Of a stretch of 64,000 nt of DNA, positions 3,851 through 56,500 are shown in pieces. Position numbers and translations under genes: made by a program. Positions within the stretch are counted from its first letter, which is position 1. The number at the start of each line of letters is the position of its first letter. The DNA is from Euprymna scolopes (lineage: Eukaryota). Location of the stretch: assembly GCA_053919585.1 (NCBI GenBank), contig CM132796.1; one strand, written 5' to 3'. The notes under the pieces were generated by a model. It had not been told where the DNA came from, made no database searches, and was given only the letters and a program-made list of their open reading frames with translations.

Positions 3851-5220
3851 TTGTATATCACATCTGCAAAAGTTTTGTATATCACATCTGCAAAAGTTTT
3901 GTATATCACATCCGCAAAAGTTTTGTATATCACATCTGCAAAAGGTTTGTATATCACATCTGCAAAATTTTTGTATATCACATCTGCAAAAGTTTTGTAT
4001 ATAACATCTGCAAAAGTTTTGTACATTTCATCTGCAAATGTTTTGTACATTACATCTCCAAAAGTTTTGTATATCACATCTGCAAAAGTTTTGTATATCA
4101 CATGAGCAAAAGTTTTGTACATTACATCTGCAAAGGTTTTGTACATCACATCTGCAAACGTTTTGTACATTACACCTGCAAACGTTTTGTATATCACATC
4201 TGCAAAACTTTTGTACATTACATCTTCAAAAGTTTTGTACATCAGATCTGCAAAAGTTTTGTACATTACATCTGCAAAAGTTTTGTATATCACATCTGCT
4301 AAAGTTTTGTATATCACATCTGCAAAAGTTTTGTATATCACATCTGCAAAAGTTTTTTACATTACATCTGCAAAAATTTTGTATATCACATCTGCAAAAG
4401 TTTTGTATATCACATCTGCAAAGGTTTTGTATATCACATCTGCAAAAGTTTTGTATATCACCTCTGCAAAATTTTTGTACATCACATCTGCAAAATATTT
4501 GTACATTACATCTGAAAAAGTTTTGTATATCACATCTGCAAAAGTTTTGTATATCACATGTGCAAAAGTTTTGTACATTACATCTGCAAACGTTTTGTAC
4601 ATTACATCTGCAAAAGTTTTGTACATTACATCTGCAAACGTTTTGTATATCACATCTGCCAACGTCTTGTACATTACATCTGCAAACGTTTTGTACATTA
4701 CATCTGCAAAAGTTTTGTACATTACATCAGCAAAAGTTTTGTATATTACATCTGCAAAAGTTTTGTATATCACATCTGCAAAAGTTTTGTACATCACATC
4801 TGCAAAGGTTTTGTACATTACATCTGCAAAAGTTTTGTATATTACATGTGCAAAAGTTTTGTATATCACATCTGCAAAAGTTTTGTACATTACATCTGCA
4901 AAAGTTTTGTACATTACATCTACAAAAGTTTTGTACATTACATCTGCAAAAGTTTTGTACATTACATCTGCAAAAGTGTTGTACATTAAATCTGCGAAAG
5001 TTTTGCACATTACATCTGCAAAAGTTTTGTATATCACATCTGATAAAGTTTTGAACATTACATCTGCAAAATTTTTGTATATCACATCTGCAAAAGTTTT
5101 GTACATTACATCTGCAAAAGTTTTGTATATCACATCTGCAAATGTTCTGTACATTACATCTGCAAAAATTTGTATATCACATCTGCAAAACTTTTGTATA
5201 TCCCATCTGTAAAAGTTTTG

Positions 5221-5249
5221 TGTATTATTATACAAACAACGTGACAGCG

Positions 5250-5289
<40 letters not shown>

Positions 5290-5321
5290 ATTCGCTGTCA
5301 CGGTGTTTGTATAAATTTACC
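5221..5321. mobile_element. MITE-like non-autonomous DNA transposon carrying telomeric repeats, inserted in the satellite
   Basis: 22-bp inverted repeats at 5228-5249 (TTATACAAACAACGTGACAGCG) and 5293-5314 with 1 mismatch, extending imperfectly to the ends. AAGTTTTG(T) is duplicated at 5213-5220(1) and 5322-5329(30). Removing the insert and one TSD copy restores an intact monomer. Confidence 0.85.
5250..5288 (+). repeat. Interstitial telomeric repeat (TTAGGG)3 TTTAGGG (TTAGGG)2 TT
   Basis: Read directly. TTAGGG is the ancestral metazoan telomere motif. Confidence 0.97.
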
Positions 5322-8300
5322 AAGTTTTGTATATCACATCTGCAAAAGTTTTGTATATCACATCTGCAAAGGTTTTGTATATCACATCTGCAAAAGCTTT
5401 GTATATCACATCTGCAAAAGTTTTGTATATTACATCTGCAAAAGTTTTGTATATCACATCTGCAAAAGTTTTGTATATCACATCTGCAAAAGTTTTGTAT
5501 ATCACATCTGCAAAAGTTTTGTATATTACATCTGCAAAAGTTTTGTATATCACATCTGCAAAGGTTTTGTATATCACATCTGAAAAAGTTTTGTATATCA
5601 CCTCTGCAACATTTTTGGTATATAACATCTTCAAAAGTTTTGTACATTACATCTGACAAAGTTTTGTACATTACATCTGCAAACGTTTTGTATATCACAT
5701 CTGCAAAAGTTTTGTATATCACATCTGCAAAAGTTTTGTACATTACATCTGCAAAAGTTTTGTACATCACATCTGCGAAACCTTTGTACATTACCTCTGC
5801 AAAAGTTTTGTACATCAGGTCTGCAAATGTCTTGTACATTACATCTGCAAAAGTTTTGTATATCACATCTGCCAAAGTTTTGTACATTACATCTGCAAAG
5901 GTTTTGTACATTACATCTGCAAAAGTTTTGTACATTACATCTGACAAAAGTTTTGTATATTACATCTGCAAAAGTGTTGCACATTACATCTGCAAAAGTT
6001 TTGTATATCACATGTGCAAAAGTTTTGTACATTACATCTACAAAAGTTTTGTATATCACATCTGCAAACGTTTTGTACATTACATCTGCAACGGTTTTGT
6101 ATATCACATCTGCAAAAGTTTTGGATATCACATCTGCAAAAGTTTTGTATATCACATCTGCAAAAGTTTTGTATATCACATCTTCAAAAGTTTTGTATAT
6201 CACATCTGCAACAGTTTTGTATATCACATCTGCAAGGGTTTTGTATATCACATCTGCAAATGTTTTGTATATCACATCTGCAAAGGTTTTGTATATCACA
6301 TCTGAAAAAGTTTTGTATATCACCTCTGCAAAATTTTTGTATATCACATCTGCAAAAGTTTTGTACATTACATCTGCAAATGTTTTGTACATTACATCTG
6401 CAAAAGTTTTGTATATCACATCTTCAAAAGTTTTGTATATCACATGTGCAAAAGTTTTGTACATTACATCTGCAAATGTTTTGTACATCACATCTGCAAA
6501 AGTTTGGTACATTACATCTGCAAACGTTTTGTACATCACATCTGCAAAACATTTGTACATTACATCTGCAAAAGTTTTGTACATCAGATCTGCAAATGTT
6601 TTGTACATTACATCTGCAAAAGTTTTGTATATCACATCTGCTAAAGTTTTGTACATTACATCTGCAAAAGTTTTGTATATCACATCTGCAAAAGTTTTGT
6701 ATATCACACCTGCAAAGGTTTTGTATATCACATCTGCAAAAGTTTTGTATATCGCATCTGCAAAAGTTGCGTATATCACATCTGCAAAAGTTTTGTATAT
6801 CACATCTGCAAAAGTCTTGTATATCACATCTGCAAAAGTTTTGTATATCATATCTGCAAAAGTTTTGTATATCACATCCGCAAAAGTTTTGTATATCACA
6901 TCTGCAAAAGGTTTGTATATCACATCTGCAAAATTTTTGTATATCACATCTGCTAAAGTTTTGTATATAACATCTGCAAAAGCTTTGTATATCACATCTG
7001 CTAAAGTTTTGTATATCACATCTGCAAAAGTTTTGTATATCACATGTGCCAAAGTTTTGTATATCACATCTGCAAAAGTTTTGTACATTACATCAGCAAA
7101 GGTTTTGTACATTACATCTGCAAAAGTTTCGTACATTACATCTGCAAAAGTTTTGTATATCACATCTGCAAAAGTTTTGTACATTACATCTGCAAAAGTT
7201 TTGTATATCACATCTGCAAAAGTTTTGTACATTACATCTGCAAAAGTTTTGTATATCACATCTGCAAAAGTTTTGTACATTACATCTGCAAGAATTTTGT
7301 ATATCACATCTGCAAAAGTTTTGTATATCACATCTGCTAAAGCTTTGTATATCACATCTGCAAAAGTTTTGTATATCACATCTTCAAAAGTTTTGTATAT
7401 CACATCTGCAAAAGTTTTGTATATCACATCTGCAAAAGTTTTGTATATCACATCTGCAAAAGTTTTGTATATCACATCTGCAAAGGTTTGGTATATCACA
7501 TCTGCAAAAGTTTTGTATATCACCTCTGCAAAATTTTTGTACATCACATCTGCAAAATTTTTGTACATTACATCTGCAAAAGTTTTGTATATCACATCTG
7601 CAAAAGTTTTGTATATCACATGTGCAAAAGTTTTGTACATTACATCTGCAAACGTTTTGTACATTACATCTGCAAAAGTTTTGTACATTACATCTGCAAA
7701 TGTTTTGTACATTACATCTGTCAACGTCTTGTACATTACATCTGCAAACGTTTTGTACATTACATCTGCAAAAGTTTTGTACATTACATCAGCAAAAGTT
7801 TTGTACATTACATCTGCAAAAGTTTTGTATATCACATCTGCAAAAGTTTTGTACATTACATCTGCAAAGGTTTTGTACATTACATCTGCAAAAGTTTTGT
7901 ATATTACATCTGCAAAAGTTTTGTATATCACATCTGCAAAAGTTTTGTACATTACATCTGCAAAAGTTTTGTACATTACATCTGCAAAAGTTTTGTACAT
8001 TACATCTGCAAAAGTTTTGTACATTACATCTGCAAAAGTTTTGTACATTACATCTGCAAAAGTTTTGTACATTACATCTGCAAAAGTTTTGTACATTACA
8101 TCTGCAAACGTTTTGCACATTACATCTGCAAAAGTTTTGTATATCACATCTGCAAAATTTTTCTACATTACATCTGCAAAAGTTTGGTATATCACATCTG
8201 AAAAAGTTTTGTACATTACATCTGCAAAAGTATTGTATATCACATCTGCAAAGGTTTTGTATATCACATCTGAAAAAGTTTTGTATATCACCTCTGCAAA

Positions 8301-47868: not shown

Positions 47869-49412
47869 CAGTAACATTTGCTACATACGGCCGGAACTTT
47901 GGCAGAGACATTTTCATAGTAATCACCGTTTCAACGTCCACAGATATCAGAACGCGCAATGACACAATGTCGTAATACCCACCCGTACACACGCAAAAAG
48001 GAAGTATTGTTGCGCTCCATGCGCAGTAATACAACAGACAGACTGGAATGTTCTAGAACATGCGTCTATAAGATTTTGCCCGCGAAATTCAAACCAGTCC
48101 AGGAATGCAGTTTTACGAGTAAAGATCAGTGCTGCCCGTCCTCAGCGTGGACTCCGTCCATTCAGACGTACAACAGTTTCGCTGAGAATGCCGCGAAAAC
48201 CAAACCAGTTTTCTCTTCAGATTTCACCAGTCCGATTCGTGTCTAAGAGGCTCCGTCTTTGGGGGATGTTAAATCACCTAACATGACTTTCTACACGTTA
48301 TGTATCTTTAATTCTCAACATGGAAAGTTATCATATCGAACGAGAATTATTCCTTATTTCGACAATGCTATTTCGAACTGCTGTTTTCACATGTGACAAG
48401 CACGCACACATACAAGACGTTTACGTAGCTTATGGCTTTCTTTTCCCCCCCAGAAAATAACCACGTGTGTCCCTCTGTTCATGACAATCAGTCATCATAA
48501 ACTTTATGCCTTTTCCACGAGACACTTATTGGCAAAGACTCTAATGAACAATCGTTGTAAAACCCTTAAGGTTGGAATAATTTGAATTACTGTTTCTTAA
48601 ACATGTAAATAAATGTTATTTCCTCCCAATACAGCGATCTGGAGTTCTTTGTCGGATGTCGTTATTTTTTCGAAGTTATTGATTTTATAGGGGTGTGGAT
48701 GTGATTATTCGGTGAAATCCTTCTGTAAATCGGAGATCTGGTTAAATTTACCTTTAACGATCCCGGTGAAATTCTACAACTTTCGACTTGTAGAGATTCC
48801 TGAACCTACAACTTTGGTCTTAAAAATTGACAGATCCTGATTATGAATTGGTGAACACCAACTCACACCCCCATATCCTATTTAGTTTAGTTTTGTTAAG
48901 ATCACCTAAATCCGATAATCTTAATATTATTTTATTTATTTTTAAAGTAAAATTTTGACAGCGGTTTGAAATAGTCCACATCGTTTTTGTTTCTCTAAAA
49001 TTACACTCTTTTTAATGTATTTATTTGCTTCTTCACCAAAGCAAATTAGGCACAAGGCCATTTTTAATGTGGGGTAAAAACCAGCTCCCCTAAAAGTAGG
49101 CAAAAAGGGGGCACTCTGGTTACCAAAAATAATAATTGTCCCAGTATAGAGGGTTTCCCCTCCATTGACTGGTACAAATTAAGTGCAGCATCTGCAGAAC
49201 AGATGGTATTTATTTGCTCCCCCACCGAGCAAATTAGGCACAAGGCCGATTTTTAATGTGAGGAGTGAAGGGAAGGGGAAGGGAAAAAGGGGACCAGCTC
49301 CCGGGAGGTGGGAAATGGGAGCTGGTTAAAGGTCAGGCATGTGGGGTTGCCCCCACATCTGGTCTTTGCTAGTCATAGCTGGTCTTTGCTAGTCATAGCT
49401 TGCAGCATCTGC

Positions 49413-49443
49413 AGAACAGATACTACACTTTGATCCCAGCCAA
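49413..49443 (-). pseudogene. U2 snRNA 5' fragment (about nt 17-47, includes the branch-point recognition sequence)
   Basis: Minus strand TTGGCTGGGATCAAAGTGTAGTATCTGTTCT versus recalled invertebrate-type U2 TTGGCTAAGATCAAAGTGTAGTATCTGTTCT (29/31). Not a full gene. Confidence 0.9.
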
Positions 49444-49662
49444 GAAGTATTTATTTGCTTCCCCACTGAGCAAATTAGACACAAGGCCGTTTTTTATTGT
49501 GGAGAGAGAGAGAGAGGGGGAAGGGAAAAGGGGACCAGCTCCCAATGGGTAGGAAATGGGAGCTGGATAGTGACAATTGGTATGAAGGGTTGCCCCTACA
49601 TTGACCAAGGTCTGATATGTGGGGTTACCCCCACATATTGTCTTTGCTTGCAGTATCTGCCG

Positions 49663-49682
49663 GAACAGATACTACACTTTGA
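49663..49682 (-). pseudogene. U2 snRNA fragment (20 bp)
   Basis: Minus strand TCAAAGTGTAGTATCTGTTC. Confidence 0.85.
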
Positions 49683-50034
49683 GGTATTTATTTGCTCCCC
49701 CACTGAGCAAATAAGGCACAAGGCCGATTTTTAATGTGTGGAGTGAATGGAAAACGGGGGGGGGACCAACTCCCCGGGGCGTAGGGGAGCTAGATAGAGA
49801 CAATTGGTATGTAGGGTTGCCCCTTCATTGACCAAGGTCTTATATGTGGGCTTGGCATTTACTTGCTCCCCCATCGAGCAAATTAGGCACAAGGGCGGTT
49901 TTTAATGTGAGGAGTGAAGGGGAAATGGAGACCAACTCTCCAGGGAGTAGGGGAGCAAGGTAGTGACATAAAGGAACCACTAGGGTAGTGACAATTGGTA
50001 TGAGGAGTGAAGGGAAAATGGAGACCAACTCCAT

Positions 50035-51021
50035 TATAATTAAAATGTGTGTGTGTGCGTGTGAAAAAAGTTCAATTCATTGGAAAATAAAAAGTTCCTG
50101 AATTTTGGAAGAAAAACAGTTCGTGTTGGGAGTGGGGAATCTAGAAAAATACGCAAAAAATAAAATTGCCTATTGCATTGTTAGTAAGGTCCCTCCCTGA
50201 GCTAATCTAGAAAGTTAGATAACCTACTGTTTTCCAGGGCACCGAAAACAAGCGGGAAGATCCCTAGTAGGGATTGGGAAGGATTCTTATCGGGAGTAGG
50301 GAGGAAAAATGCATAATTGTCAAAAACAAAAAAGGGGGGTGGATGGGGGGCGGGTAGGCGGCGACCTTCGAGTAGGGGTTGACCAGGGGGTGATAAAACA
50401 AAAAGATAGGGGTGGGCGTAGTGGTAGGGTAGCCTCGGAAGGTTCTCTAGTGCCAAAAAACAAACAATTGGGGGACAGGATCTCATTTGTACTACCAGTC
50501 AAGAGTCTCTTAACTTTTTGTTTGTCTAACCTAGCGGGATGGGCTCTGTAGGACCCAGTATAGCGTGTGCCATGCTTATGGTGGTAACACAAATTCAAAC
50601 TTGGCGCCTCGTTGGATGCACAAGCTAGCGTCATGCATCCACCTCTTGTCAAAGGCCATTCGAGGTAACCTCTTCCAATTGCATCTGATCTTTACTTTAA
50701 GCAGATGTTTAAAGTAGACGATCAGATCCTGATCTGGAACAGATATCCCTTCGCGGACTTGCTTCAGGCCTGTGATCCATATGACCATCCTCGCTACTGC
50801 TAGTATCGCTAAAAAAACCCATTCTTTTCTCCATAGGCAGCAGCAGATCAATGTTCTCCACAAAATATGACACGTTGAGTTCGAGTCAGTGCTTGGCATC
50901 GATGCGAGCCGTTACCTTGTTGACGTACCCTAGGAGGGGCTTGAGCCTGCTGCAGCGGAAAAAGGTATGACTGATAAAAATAAAAAATGAGGTAACTGGG
51001 AGAACAGATACTACACTTTGA
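50035..51021 (-). mobile_element. Internally deleted Tx1/L1-clade LINE (copy C): U2 head, short leader, ORF2 C-terminus and 3' UTR
   Basis: 50576-50913 encodes ..AVARMVIW..DQDLIVYFKH.LKVKIRC..AFDKRW..ASLC..RGAKFE.., homologous to the ORF2 end at 53759-54090. Its 3' UTR differs from copies A and B. Confidence 0.75.
51001..51021 (-). pseudogene. U2 snRNA fragment (21 bp) at a LINE-LINE junction
   Basis: Minus strand TCAAAGTGTAGTATCTGTTCT immediately after AATAAAAGATTTAATATC. Confidence 0.85.
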
Positions 51022-53118
51022 GATATTAAATCTTTTATTCATGTTAAAAATAAATGGAAAATCAAAAATGAACAAAAAACTTAGGCACATGGCCAACTCA
51101 AAAGGGGGGATTGTGGGAGTTTTTGGTCATCCTTGTCACTCCATAACTAAACAAAATCCAAAGTTTCTCCCAGCTAATATCTTCTTTCACCATAATACCG
51201 CATTCACCCTTTCATACTGGGAGACGTCCTACTTAACTCCTAATTTTTAAAACAATTTTTATTGACGTGTAAAAACAAAAAAAGATAACAATAAAAATGG
51301 TACAATAATTTATTTGTGTCGAGGGCGGGAGGAAAAAGGGGTGGGGTGGTGATTAGTACAACCCTCCCAACCCTGTCTAGTTGATAGACTGCCCGTTCCA
51401 CTAGGTTTGTAGAAGGAACCTCGCTTCTGCAAGTCAGTCTCTAAGTGGGGATGCCCTCTAGATGGGGATGACTGGAGAAAAGAAAATTTTTTTGTGGGTA
51501 AGGAATAGGGGTTAGTTTGTATTTCTTTCTCTTCAAGATGGGTGAAATTTAGAGGAAGGGGTGAAAACGAAAATTGCAAGAAGGAGGGGGTGGGGATCTT
51601 GGAGGCTTCTTAATCGAGGAGGGATGGAACACACACTCAGCTAGCTTCCGTGTCGTCAACTATTTCCCTATCTAGGATCGTGTGGATCAGGTGCAAATTG
51701 TTCTGAATTGATCTCACCTTCACAGTGTAGTTTTCTTCCGGTTCAACCAACTCATCAATAGCAACCTGCAGCCGATTCGACAGGACCTTTGCCAAAATCT
51801 TAAACTCCGTGTTTAGCAGAGTTATGGGCCTGTAGTCGTCTAACTCTTCTCCTCCATGCCCGTCACCTTTCTTCAGCAATGTGATCATTCCCTTGGTTAC
51901 CTGCCCTGGGATGGATCCCTCAGCAAACCAATGGTTGAACACATCCATCAGAAGAGGCAGAAACATGGGCGACAGCCTCAAGTACAGTGCGTATGGCCCT
52001 TTCCTCTTGGAGTTGTCCTCTTGGGGAGCCTGGGCAGGAGTGCTTTCTCCAACTGACGAGGATTGAGGTGGAAGGGGTGTCGCAGGATGTGTACCATCCT
52101 GATCGCACCTCATTCCCTCTCCAGCCGCTTCTTTGACTCCCCGGTCTGGGGAGTGGCCCTCGTGGGGAGCTGGGAGCGGGATTGGTTTCCCTCCTGATGT
52201 TGAATCTGGCTGGGTCACCGCGGGCTGTGGCCCTACCCTGGCTTTCTCCTCCTCTTCATCCCTCGTGTGAGGTGCTCCCTCCGATGGGGAGTAGTCCAGT
52301 GGGGCGATGTGGTGCATCTGAGGTGGTATACGCCTTTTCCCTGGCATCACGTGGAAAAAAACTGGACTGGCCGCTGATGCGGACCAAATTGTAGCAGGGG
52401 AGAAAAGAAAATGCAGGGAAATGGGGGGAGGTGGAGGGGAGTGGGTGAGGTCAGAAGAGAGAAAGTGGATTGACCTCCCCTCACGGGGATGTCGGATTAG
52501 TCAGCTCAGATCCCCCGCAAGAGCAGCGAAGGAAGATGCAGTGGGTGCTAGCGGGTCAGAGATTAAGAGAGAGAGAGGATAGACATCTCTGCCCAGAGAG
52601 GGGAGCAGAAACGAAACACCCGCCCTACCCACGTCACCCTACCCACAAACCACCCCAAGGAAGTGAGAAAGAGAACCCGGTCTGCTCAATCCACTGGGAG
52701 AGCAGCGAAGGAAGACAAAGATTGGGCCTGGCAGGTCAGAGTGCTGCTCAGGCAATTAAGAGAGGAGAGAATAGACCATTTCAACCTCAGAGGTGAGGAG
52801 GAAACGAAGTACCCAACAAACTAAAGCTAAACCGACCAGGTCACGTCTACCAAAGAAAGTGTTGTCGGTCCCGAGAACAGCAAACTTCCAAAGAAGGGAT
52901 CGGTTTTAGGGTCCAGACTACCACACAACGGCGTCGGTCCTGGGGGAGCGAAAAGGGTCCAGACTCCCCAAAGAGGGGGTCGGTCTCACTAACAAAGGTT
53001 AGTAAAGTCACAAAAGTGACAAAAGTGAAAGCCTTAAACTTGACGGGTGTGTCAAGTGGCGGACCTCTTGGAAAAAAATCAAAAATAAGTAACTGGGAGA
53101 ACAGATACTACACTTTGA
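51022..53118 (-). mobile_element. Internally deleted Tx1/L1-clade LINE (copy B): U2 head, 5' UTR-like region, RT N-terminal fragment and 3' UTR
   Basis: ORF 51637..52350 includes ITLLKKG..DDYRPITLLNTEFKILAKVLSNRL (start of a non-LTR RT domain). 50992-51646 is closely similar to 53089-53710. AATAAA near the 3' end. Confidence 0.85.
53098..53118 (-). pseudogene. U2 snRNA fragment (21 bp) at a LINE-LINE junction
   Basis: Same sequence and junction as 51001-51021. Confidence 0.85.
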
Positions 53119-55432
53119 GATATTAAATCTTTTATTCATGTTAAAAATACAGTCAAAATCAACAATGAACAAAAAACTTAGGCAAATGGCCAACTCAAAG
53201 GGGGGTATTGTGGGGGTCGTTGGTCGTCCTTGTCACTCCAGAACTAAGCAAAATCAAAAGTTTCTCCCAGCTAGTATCTTCTTTCACCATAATACCGCAT
53301 TCACCCTTTCATATTGGGGGGCGTCCTACTTAACTCCCAGTTTTTAAAACATTTTTTATTGACATGTAAAAGCAAAAAAAGATAACAATAAAATGGTACA
53401 ATAATTCATTTGTGTCGAGGGCGGGGGGAAGAAAAAACAAAAGGTGATTAGTAGGACCCTCCCAACCCCGTCTAGTTGATAGACTGCCCGTTCCACTAGG
53501 TTTGTAAAAGGTGGGGATGCCCTCTAGATGGGGGTGAATGGAGAAAAGAAAATTTTTGTGGGTAAGGGATGGGGGTTAGTTTGTATTTCTATCTCTCAAA
53601 GATGGGTGAAATTTAGAGGAAGGGATTAAAACAAAAATTGCAAGTAAGAGGGGGTGGGGATCTTGGAGGCTTCCTAATCGGGTAGAGATGGAACACACAC
53701 TCAACTAGCTGAGAGGCTACTTGTTTAATTTTACTTTATGGAACTGCGTGTTCCACACCTAGGTGGGGAACACGTATTCAAATTTGGCTCCTCTTCATAC
53801 ACACAGACTTGCTACCTATATCCATCTTCTGTCAAATGCAGCGCGATGCAGCCTTCTTCTATCACATCTGATTTTCATCCGTAGTTAGTGTTTAAAGAAA
53901 GCAATCAGATCCTGATCAGAAAAAGACAACACCGGAAACCTTGCCGACGCAATGTCCAAATCACCGTTCTTGCCACGGCCGGGATCATAACGTAGACCAT
54001 TTATCTTTCCCGGTCCAACGGTGGCCTCACGTTGTCCATGACATTGGATACAGTAATTGGGCGAGGATGCTCAGGATCGATGCGAGCCGTCACTTCACTG
54101 ACCAGTACTGGCGGAGTTTGTGGCAATCGAAGAAAGTGTGATCAGTAGTTTCTACAGCTGTTGTCCCACAACGGGGACAATCAGGCGACTCCAAAAACCC
54201 GGAACTGCATTGTATGTTGTTGAGTGGAAGTGCATTTCGGGCCAATCGCCAGGTCAGAGAGAATTCCGAATTGTTCAGATGACTCGAACGTGGCACCCAG
54301 CTCCATGCGGAGCGGATCTCACTCTGCTGCCAACCTAAATGCGCGCATAATGGGTCGTCGGTGGTCTCCTACACTAGATCCCTGTGGAGTTCCCCACGGG
54401 TAGCAGTCACAAGGTTGCTGGACCTTGGTAGTCGTTTTAGCACGGTTCGGCACTCTTTCATGTAGGTAGAGTTTCCCCATGGCCTACGACGGCTCTCAAT
54501 AGAAGGGTCGAGAATGAGGTCGGGGAAGGCGGCAGTAACCACGGGGTGCCACGGTTGGTCATCTTGCATATAGTGGCTGAGGAAGGCCAGCCTCTCAGCA
54601 TCTCGATGACACTTCAAGTCCGGCATTCCCAATGCTCCCTCACACGGACGTTGAATACAGATCTGTCTGCTCACCCAGTATCTTCCTCTGTCCCAAAGAA
54701 GCGAGGACAAGAGTTCGACAAGAGCTGTTAGGCGTTGTGCAGGCAGGGGAAGTACGGCCAGTCAGTAAAGGATGAGAGGAAAGACGTAAGTGGCGCACAC
54801 CTCAGCTCTACCCTTTAAGGAAAGTTTCCTAGGAAGCCACGAATTGACTGCAGCCTCCACCTTTGACCGTACCTTCAACCAATTCTTGTCAAGCTGGAAA
54901 CCCGGTCCGAACCACATACAGAGGATCCGGACAGGGCCATCTATCCAGCTGAAGGGCGCTGGGAGGTTTGTGTTGCCACTCCAGGCACCCAACTGCAGTC
55001 CTACCGACTTGCTGCGGTTTATCTTGGCCCCCATGATTCTTTCGTACTGTGCAAGTGCCTCCGACATGATCTCAGTGTCTCTGAAGCCCGACATGAAGAC
55101 CGTGACATCATCGGCGAATGCGGATACCTTGGCGGCTGAGCCGCCAGGTAGAGCCATTCCGCGCAGGGCCGAATTTGCCTCCCCATGTCTCAGCTTGCGG
55201 AGCAGAGGCTCCAAGGCCAGGACATAAAGCAGGGGTGACAGCGGACAACCTTGACGAACCGACCAAGAGATAACAAACGGTTTCGAGCGCTTTCTGTTGA
55301 CTTGCACGACAGCCGTGGGCTGTTGATACATTATGGAGATCCACTTGCAAAAGTCCGGTTTAAAACCGGCGGCCTCTAAGACAGATGCCAGGAAACGATG
55401 ATTGACCCTATCGAAAGCTTTGAACTAATCAA
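53119..55432 (-). mobile_element. 5'-truncated Tx1/L1-clade LINE (copy A), ORF2 pseudogene (RT, C-terminal zinc finger) and 3' UTR
   Basis: Motifs KAFDRVNH, VRQGCPLSPLLY, SAFADDV, GAKINRSKS, LSLKGRA and CPRC..ET.DH.FFDC. In-frame stops and frameshifts. ORF2 stop at ~53759. Confidence 0.92.
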
Positions 55433-56500
55433 CACAACCGTTTGAAAGACTCAATCTTGATTTTAAAGGATTGCTACCAAGCAAAACAAAGAACCGATAT
55501 ATATTAACTGTTGTCGATGAATATTCACGGTTTTCTTTTGTCTTTCCCTGCTCAAACATATCGACTATTGCAATTATACAATGCCTCTGTTCACTATTTG
55601 CTGTCTTTGGAGTTCATTATATATATTCAGACTGAGTGGCTTCTTTCATTTCAGAGCAGCTTTGACAATTTCTACAGGTATGAGGAGTAGCTATAAGCCA
55701 GACAACTCCCTACAACCCTAAGGGTAACAGCCAATGTGAAATATAATGGCATTATTTGGAAGACTGTTCAATTAGCTGCATCAAATAATGGATGTTCGGT
55801 TGATAATTGGGAAAATCTCCTGCCTGTTGCATTATACGCCATTTGATCCCTATTGTGTACTGCCACGAATGCCATCACACATGAAAGCTTTTTACCTTTT
55901 CAACGATGGAGTTTGGCAAGAGATTTGCTTCCATCTTGGCTTTCTCAATCCAGTTCTGTGTTTTAGAGATGACATGCATGTTACACCAAATATGATCCCC
56001 TGGCAAACCAGCAGTACGCTCTAGTACGACTTGCAGATGATAGAGAGTCTAATGTGTCTCTCAGAGACCTAGCACTTACCAGAGATGTACCAGGACCATG
56101 AACAATTCCTGAGGACAGACCAATTCCCCCTGAGATTGAAGCTGCTCTGGAAGATCATGGCACTAAAATTGCTCCTTACATGTCATCTAATGACACTGTC
56201 TCCGTTGGGGCTCTGTCACACACTTCAGATGAGTCAACACCTGAATCCCTGACAGATGAAGGACTAGCACCGAAAAAATGTGTTCATCCAGAGACTGACT
56301 CTGATGTGGAACGGTCTGCTCTTCTGAGAAGGAAACATTTCAGAGCAAGGTATTTTAGAGCCCACAGACAGACTTGCACTGAAAAGCCTCCCTGTTTGAG
56401 TACTCTGACCCCGAATCATGGACTGCTGAGGCAGCCACTGCAAGCACGGACATTTAAGGAACTTTCTTACCTATGAGTGAGAAATTTGGTGGGGGGAGAA
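55433..56500 (+). mobile_element. Gypsy/Ty3 LTR retrotransposon remnant: degenerate integrase, 3' internal region and polypurine tract
   Basis: Manual translation from 55433 gives TQPFERLNLDFKG..YILTVVDEYSRF..SD..F.S..TTPYNPKGNSQCE (rve DDE core) with stops. PPT GGTGGGGGGAGAA at 56488-56500. Confidence 0.88.

Follow-up and report, generated by a model that had tools for sequence, protein, structure and literature searches.

Long interspersed nuclear elements (LINEs) with fixed insertion sites live in multicopy host sequence, as R1 and R2 do in ribosomal DNA and Tx1L in Tx1D of Xenopus, where the host is itself another mobile element. Keno LINEs, members of the Tx1 clade with an apurinic/apyrimidinic (AP) endonuclease, are specific for U2 small nuclear RNA (snRNA) genes (Kojima & Fujiwara 2004, as cited in PMC4494074 and PMC4640811), and at the Keno/Utopia site U2 resumes at nucleotide (nt) 39 with the motif TCTGTTCTT (PMC4640811). 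Utopia LINEs, which also target U2, use a restriction-like endonuclease, occasionally form tandems in U2 genes and make 20-bp duplications in reptile families (PMC4640811). SINEU, a group of short interspersed elements (SINEs) with U1- or U2-derived heads, has been reported solely from crocodilians and is mobilised by Keno-related Tx1-Mar LINEs that home to Mariner, some of which share the SINEU heads (PMC4494074). Here we describe a stack of eight retroelement pieces that lie end to end on the minus strand (49017-55430; sequence reading) and are joined at fragments of U2, within a 64,000-nt window of the Euprymna scolopes genome (GCA_053919585.1, contig CM132796.1), itself part of a 5.9-Gb assembly.

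We consider it likely that this stack grew through a series of target-primed retrotranspositions, all into a single U2-derived leader, with the site restored at every step. U2 positions are numbered on the genome's own U2, which reads ATCGCTTCTCGGCCTTTTGGCTAAGATCAAAGTG... and has TCAAAG from nt 27, ATCTGTTC from nt 39 and TCTGTTCT up to nt 47; a junction written 26/27 falls between nt 26 and nt 27. An earlier note, made from the letters of the window, had proposed a U2-sequence-specific system that feeds itself, and this proposal was borne out: throughout the genome, and for several tail types, the 3′ junctions sit at fixed bases of U2. The same note had observed that three junctions in the window open at one identical base after two tail types. 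We found that the base is indeed fixed for each tail type, being 26/27 (TCAAAG) for a 7.1-kb LINE (LINE1), 38/39 (ATCTGTTC) for the short tail of a family of short elements (SINE-1) and 22/23 (AAGATCAAAG) for a 7.6-kb LINE (LINE3), but that the lineages differ from one another, with a further one at −1/+1. The system resembles Keno in having an ORF2 (ORF, open reading frame) with an AP-endonuclease and a reverse transcriptase (RT), a precise 3′ junction in the 5′ part of U2, and a short-tail junction at or near the Keno site. It differs from Keno in that the targets are mostly U2-derived leaders rather than U2 genes, in that the LINE1 site lies 12 nt upstream and those of other lineages at 22/23 and −1/+1, and in copy numbers that run from thousands to tens of thousands.

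LINE1 is 7.1 kb at full length (tandem arrays) and encodes an ORF1 of ~990 codons with a CCHC knuckle and an ORF2 of 1170 amino acids, in which an N-terminal AP-endonuclease (Exo_endo_phos), RVT_1 and zf-RVT were found (Pfam). Whereas the Utopia endonuclease is a C-terminal PD-(D/E)xK domain, that of LINE1 is N-terminal and AP-type. The closest solved relative of ORF2 is human L1 ORF2p (E 1e-64), and its nearest database proteins are 62% identical and carry no family name; the ORF2 domains and the match to L1 ORF2p fit the L1/Tx1 group, within which a place in the Tx1 clade or Keno is putative. Four LINE1 copies of one array were 99.5-99.9% identical, with both ORFs open in all four, and units of two arrays 18 Mb apart were 99.5-99.85% identical, which is the within-array level. 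Equal identity within and between arrays, together with the open frames, indicates that the LINE1 family is very young and that array members are not local duplicates. The LINE1 5′ region was also present in contigs of poly(A) or oligo-dT RNA sequencing runs from at least four studies (runs labelled mollusc or invertebrate metagenome; contigs only), although these contigs show no start site and could reflect DNA carry-over; one of them joins the LINE1 tail, the U2 piece and the 5′ end. At the sequence ends of the element, the last 11-12 nt of the tail (AGATTTAATATC; L031:9436-9490, window 53119-53130) resemble U2 nt 52-62 and the first 8 nt of full-length LINE1 (TCTGATAC) are identical to U2 nt 61-68, as if both ends held extra U2 sequence.

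The 16-nt LINE1 tail occurs in 3,448 copies. Of the first 100, 94 run straight into U2 at nt 27, always in register; five of the others have a shorter or rearranged U2 piece and one has an unrelated flank. Beyond the tail and U2 nt 27-46, every sampled locus continued into a SINE-1 or SINE-2 body, a CYCAGTTAC head or a LINE 5′ end (20/20; random DNA 0/20). On the other side, a U2 head lay directly upstream of 12 of 13 truncated LINE1 copies, the head ending anywhere between ~nt 18 and nt 45, and at these copies the target was either duplicated over 2-17 bp or had lost a few bases in a small deletion. A 20-21-bp duplication (nt 27-47) was present at every full-length copy. The flanks of the truncated copies mark them as target-primed insertions into heads that were already there, in which the bottom-strand nick would be exact at 26/27 and the 5′ join variable. 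One array read, in order, unrelated flank, complete head, four full-length LINE1s separated by nt 27-46, nt 27-46 again, and a SINE body. It had been claimed that all of these families carry the U2 5′ end as their head; this holds for the short elements and probably for the CYCAGTTAC-type LINE, but not for LINE1, whose 20-21-nt U2 piece is a duplicated target and not a carried head. Since the duplication keeps nt 1-47 intact upstream of the new copy, the site would be usable again.

A genome search for the U2 20-mer, as the note had suggested, returned 53,390 copies (reversed control, 0), mostly in U2-headed elements. At 30 consecutive loci, the remaining U2 5′ sequence mostly stood before the 20-mer, with unrelated DNA further upstream, and one of several different bodies came after it. 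These loci are short retroposons with a U2 head, and the heads match U2 nt 1-47. SINE-1, which is non-coding and ~180-220 bp long, has the tail GCAAATAAATACC, found at least 54,824 times; SINE-2 is ~190 bp long, ends in AGTAAATAGGTACA and occurs scattered over non-U2 sites, where target duplications of 8-14 bp flank it. Neither end contains a poly(A) run. SINE-1 founder arrays in ordinary DNA are bounded by an 18-21-bp non-U2 duplication, and their head starts at U2 nt 1. We classed the first 100 of the 54,824 short tails by what comes next. In 76 this was ATCTGTTC, which places the junction no more than one base from the Keno/Utopia site given in the literature; 4 ran into TCAAAG, 5 into a complete head, 8 into the SINE body next to its hairpin and 7 into other DNA. 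Arrays of SINE-1 mix subfamilies of 183, 194, 208-210 and 218 bp (28 units at one locus, for example). Short tails also adjoin SINE-2 bodies and LINE heads, which indicates that the target is any U2-like leader. In addition, the 3′ ends of LINEs and SINEs have in common the motif GGCC(T/A)T(G/T)TGCCTAA and a terminal stem-loop, which fits a partner relationship. We dropped the possibility that the unit is an internally deleted U2 like SINEU-3, with the 3′ half of U2 as its body, since a headless body had no U2 match at E up to 10.

Two further features of the short elements were observed. Short units often start exactly beside a body hairpin (..GGGGGCAACCCC..) straight after another tail (window 49853/49854), as in ~8% of genomic short-tail junctions, and such hairpin-start units can form arrays with a period of ~154 bp; these junctions look like the product of reverse-transcriptase stalling and template jumping. 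Among sampled heads with TTGGCTAAGATCAA, recurrent strings stood just before the head start (e.g. ...TAATAAAAATGATTTGT, ...ATATTACG and ...ATAAGACGG), which suggests that other tail types or families also abut the head on its 5′ side.

As in SINEU, these are short retroposons with a U2-derived head, the partner LINE and SINE share a target preference, and such heads are shared by related, here putatively Tx1, LINEs. Of the features that mark SINEU, we found the U2 head, the short, non-coding and high-copy character and target duplications (8-21 bp), but no poly(A). SINEU, moreover, targets the Mariner transposon, ends in poly(A) and is old (85-91% identity to consensus), whereas here the head is the target, the tails are specific and not poly(A), and the LINE is 99.5-99.9% identical between copies. 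Our full-text searches brought up no account of U2-headed SINEs from molluscs, and decapodiform cephalopods have been characterised as SINE-poor.

Elements of the 7.6-kb LINE3 lineage begin with CYCAGTTAC (at least 649 copies) and carry a tail ...AATAAAYTATATA... that adjoins AAGATCAAAG, that is, 22/23; this tail is the real 3′ end of the lineage. A U2 match that always stops at TCTGTTCT had been described at the junctions. This is the main stop, but a weak likeness to U2 runs on for a few bases, CYCAGTTAC resembling U2 nt 48-57. Beside related LINEs of other species, no U2 pieces were found in contigs L051, L052 and L053 (46-60% ORF2 identity). L053, which comes from another species and whose ORF2 is 60% identical, has one 20-nt sequence (ACCTGTGAACTGCGTGTCTT) on both flanks of its LINE (860-900 and 7340-7400), ~25 nt downstream of a TATA-like box, and this LINE seems to home to the start of a different gene or repeat. 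For the closest relative (ENA ERZ21867824; ORF2 62% identical), gene maps show head-to-tail tandems in the order ORF2-ORF1-ORF2 with a period of ~6.4 kb, which indicates that stacking of this LINE group is not confined to the E. scolopes genome.

We then compared these elements with genuine U2 genes, counted by a sequence pattern that spans nt 22-56 and includes the true downstream sequence. The pattern identified 1,185 U2 copies, most of which are arranged in tandem on contig 9 as 764-bp units (~168.867-168.968 Mb, minus strand). Interrupted true U2 genes, which the note had thought worth seeking, proved rare for the two main tails: a LINE1 tail stood before TCAAAG in one gene and a foreign base before ATCTGTTC in none, with two doubtful cases before TCTGTTC. 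Related lineages do occupy the U2 array. In three U2 units, a tail ...ACTAAATAC(C/A) adjoins U2 nt +1 exactly, behind gaps of ~7.13 kb. A gap of 7,618 bp splits one U2 gene, with the 5′ part reaching at least nt 25 and the 3′ part starting from nt 22 or before, as would fit the pattern of the 7.6-kb lineage.

In the window, all five U2 junctions that had been noted were found on the minus-strand reading, and the head-to-tail order and strand of the eight pieces stood. The third 'LINE' (51000-49683), however, is composite, combining a LINE 3′ fragment with two incomplete short units, and the first LINE copy has its 5′ edge at ~55430 rather than 55432. The features, listed from the 5′ end of the stack, were as follows.

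55437..55500, minus strand: possible decayed U2 head just upstream of E1 (weak; local alignment score 29, reached by 3% of shuffles).
53119..55430, minus strand: E1, a 5′-truncated, decayed copy of the 7.1-kb LINE1, with the second half of RT, zf-RVT, 3′ untranslated region (UTR) and tail ...AAAAGATTTAATATC.
53098..53118, minus strand: U2 nt 27-47 (TCAAAG...TCTGTTCT), a 21-nt target piece that separates the E1 tail from the 5′ end of E2.
51022..53097, minus strand: E2, an internally deleted LINE derivative with 5′ end CCCAGTTAC, LINE3-like 5′ UTR, RT fragment, and LINE1-type 3′ UTR and tail.
51001..51021, minus strand: U2 nt 27-47, the second copy of the LINE-tail junction, after a tail ending ...AAAAGATTTAATATC at 51022 and followed by CCCAGTTAC.
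50046..51000, minus strand: E3a, a LINE3-type fragment with 5′ end CCCAGTTAC, the end of ORF2 and a 3′ UTR that stops at a (CA)n run.
49854..50045, minus strand: Sx1, (CA)n and then a partial SINE-1-like unit with a decayed tail (GCAAGTAAATGCC; sequence reading).
49683..49853, minus strand: Sx2, a SINE-1 unit that starts mid-body at the hairpin (..CCCACATAT), tail GCAAATAAATACC (sequence reading).
49663..49682, minus strand: U2 nt 27-46, a 20-nt piece after a short tail (minor junction type of the short tail).
49447..49662, minus strand: S1, a SINE-1 unit of subfamily A (sequence reading, subfamily comparison).
49413..49446, minus strand: the U2-derived head of S2, 34 nt, near-complete from ~nt 5 with an internal gap (Rfam U2 alignment).
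49205..49412, minus strand: S2, a SINE-1 unit of subfamily T with two strong body hairpins (body fold z-score −4.95).
49196..49204, minus strand: U2 nt 39-47 (ATCTGTTCT), 9 nt, the dominant genome-wide junction type of the short tail (sequence reading).
49017..49195, minus strand: S3, a SINE-1 unit of subfamily K, whose tail adjoins unrelated, non-element DNA at 49017.

The stack thus holds two partial short units and three complete ones from three subfamilies, beside the LINE pieces, and the short tail ...GCAAATAAATACC ends at 49683, 49447, 49205 and 49017. Compared with a full-length genomic LINE1, E1 is 91% identical over reference positions 4777-7127 (blastn); its ORFs are broken, and their fragments match Pfam RVT_1 and zf-RVT. 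E2 matches the full-length LINE1 at positions 4407-4760 (92%) and 6508-7127 (89%), with a weak RVT_1 match, while its 5′ part is 77% identical to the 5′ region of the 7.6-kb LINE3 (locus L048). E3a is 90% identical to the LINE 3′ UTR in locus L008 and 72% in L025. Together, E3a and the 5′ part of E2 appear to belong to, or at least to resemble, the 7.6-kb lineage. The 3′ UTR of this lineage contains a (CA)n(GA)n microsatellite (L008:1120-1230), and E3a is cut off there (window 50043-50056).

The U2 20-mer occurs four times in the window (0 expected). Rfam detected no U2 gene in the window at the gathering threshold; the U2 model did match the S2 unit (49286-49451; 28.1 bits, E 0.011), under the gathering score, which indicates that there is no U2 gene within the stack. 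Consistent with the claim that such arrays sit away from U2 genes, the targets are the U2-derived heads of earlier copies. A target duplication around the whole window stack was looked for and not found.

The stacks could have been built up as follows. The genome holds several related LINE lineages of L1/Tx1 type along with short non-coding partners that have a 3′ motif in common with them. The endonuclease of each lineage would nick the bottom strand at its own fixed U2 base, and the new copy would be joined at its 5′ end through homology to the leader, with a duplication that may reach nt 47. An intact leader would thereby be restored upstream, allowing further landings, and mixed head-to-tail arrays would grow at the leader, which may first have been acquired by transcription from a U2 promoter. 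For the window, S3 is the likely founder of the stack, as its tail meets non-element DNA. S3 would have come first, and later units would have landed in the leader at 38/39, at 26/27 or by its 5′ end, each upstream of the previous one and with the LINE-type copies last. Because the leader upstream of E1 is at best decayed and the boundary between E3a and Sx1 is irregular, the record in the window appears to be old and partly rearranged. The fixed 3′ junctions, the split heads, the duplications, the copy numbers and the youth and open frames of the LINE are direct observations, whereas which protein nicks where, the homology-based 5′ joining, the order of events in the window and the promoter origin of the leader are points that we infer.

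Simpler accounts of the U2 pieces were weighed against this one. If the U2 piece were an invariant end of the LINE's own 3′ tail, it should follow nearly every tail, and ~95% of LINE1 tails do carry it; what comes next, however, is not random flank but the body of another element in 20/20 tails, always continuing a U2-headed element past nt 46/47, and the other part of the head lies upstream of the LINE. This explanation is the least credible of those we considered. If one ancestral junction had been duplicated locally in tandem, or multiplied by unequal crossing-over, and the copies had then diverged, this would account for the head-to-tail order on one strand and for the near-identical neighbours in some arrays (99.96% in one pair). 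Yet the eight pieces of the stack come from at least four families and differ in length, the same junctions recur at thousands of unlinked loci with the same U2 preference at 3′ junctions genome-wide, and identity between loci equals that within arrays, so that we regard this origin as highly improbable. Both of these alternatives, as well as a lack of U2 preference at 3′ junctions elsewhere, had been named by the note as grounds for rejecting its proposal, and none of the three is what we found. Template switching, in which the RT reaches a fixed point of one element RNA, be it the 5′ end, a hairpin or a base of the U2 leader, and jumps to the 3′ end of another, so that multi-unit arrays form in single events, is a more serious alternative, although we judge it unlikely as the general explanation. 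It has been called upon for snRNA head addition (Kojima 2015, PMC4494074), and both the blocks of like subfamilies inside arrays and the bounding of founder arrays by a single target duplication speak for it. It cannot explain truncated LINE copies that lie between the two halves of one head with variable overlap (12/13), nor four full-length LINEs inside one SINE head, and it leaves unexplained why three tail types each hold to their own fixed U2 base. Template jumping may well contribute to the short-unit arrays.

Several observations weigh against repeated target-primed insertion into U2-derived leaders as the whole account. Junctions of a tail with the mid-body hairpin (~8%; window 49854/49853) and with nt 1-3 of a head (~5%) fit jumping better than nicking, and the structure of short-unit arrays could come from template jumps in one reverse transcription. 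One of the 13 truncated LINE1 copies had no U2 head upstream, the head upstream of E1 is at best decayed, and no LINE bearing exactly the SINE-1 tail was present among the sampled loci. Moreover, if all U2-like sites were used and kept equally, ~70 LINE1 junctions would be expected in U2 genes (2.2% of 3,448 x 0.95), along with several hundred, on one estimate ~900, short-tail junctions where 0 were found. As U2 genes share the 47 nt and are nonetheless under-hit, sequence alone fails to explain where the copies are located. The deficit in U2 genes could come from purging or selection in the gene array, from chromatin or from a true bias, and selection or purging would explain it equally well as a decoy role of the heads.

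Beyond the stack itself, a wider scenario can be offered tentatively, as one that we think has a minority chance of being right. At least four related LINE lineages would have divided U2 nt 1-47 among themselves by nick site, and their partners would have multiplied the target >40-fold outside U2 genes. The heads would absorb nearly all insertions of two lineages and so spare the U2 array, acting as a self-made safe harbour, and they would owe their origin to a LINE resident in U2 that was transcribed from the U2 promoter.

Parts of this system are of known kinds, recalling Keno, Utopia and SINEU; what is new is that the head is the target, that insertion restores the target, that the lineages split 47 nt between them, the scale, and the invertebrate host. 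In the Tx1L and R1/R2 systems, in contrast, no non-autonomous partner of the LINE brings the target along, and insertion leaves no reusable target. Scarcity of targets is considered to limit site-specific LINEs in general, and specificity for U2 has been termed a poor survival strategy on that account (Kojima and Jurka, PMC4640811). Here that limit appears to be lifted, since non-autonomous partners carry the target and insertion restores it, and a single genome has accumulated copies by the tens of thousands and stacks by the thousands. Known so far from crocodilians, snRNA-headed SINEs now have a representative in an invertebrate, apparently a mollusc, and our results offer a concrete origin for such heads. 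Young LINEs with intact frames and a 47-nt target would provide a test system for sequence-specific nicking and target regeneration, which is relevant to tools for targeted insertion.

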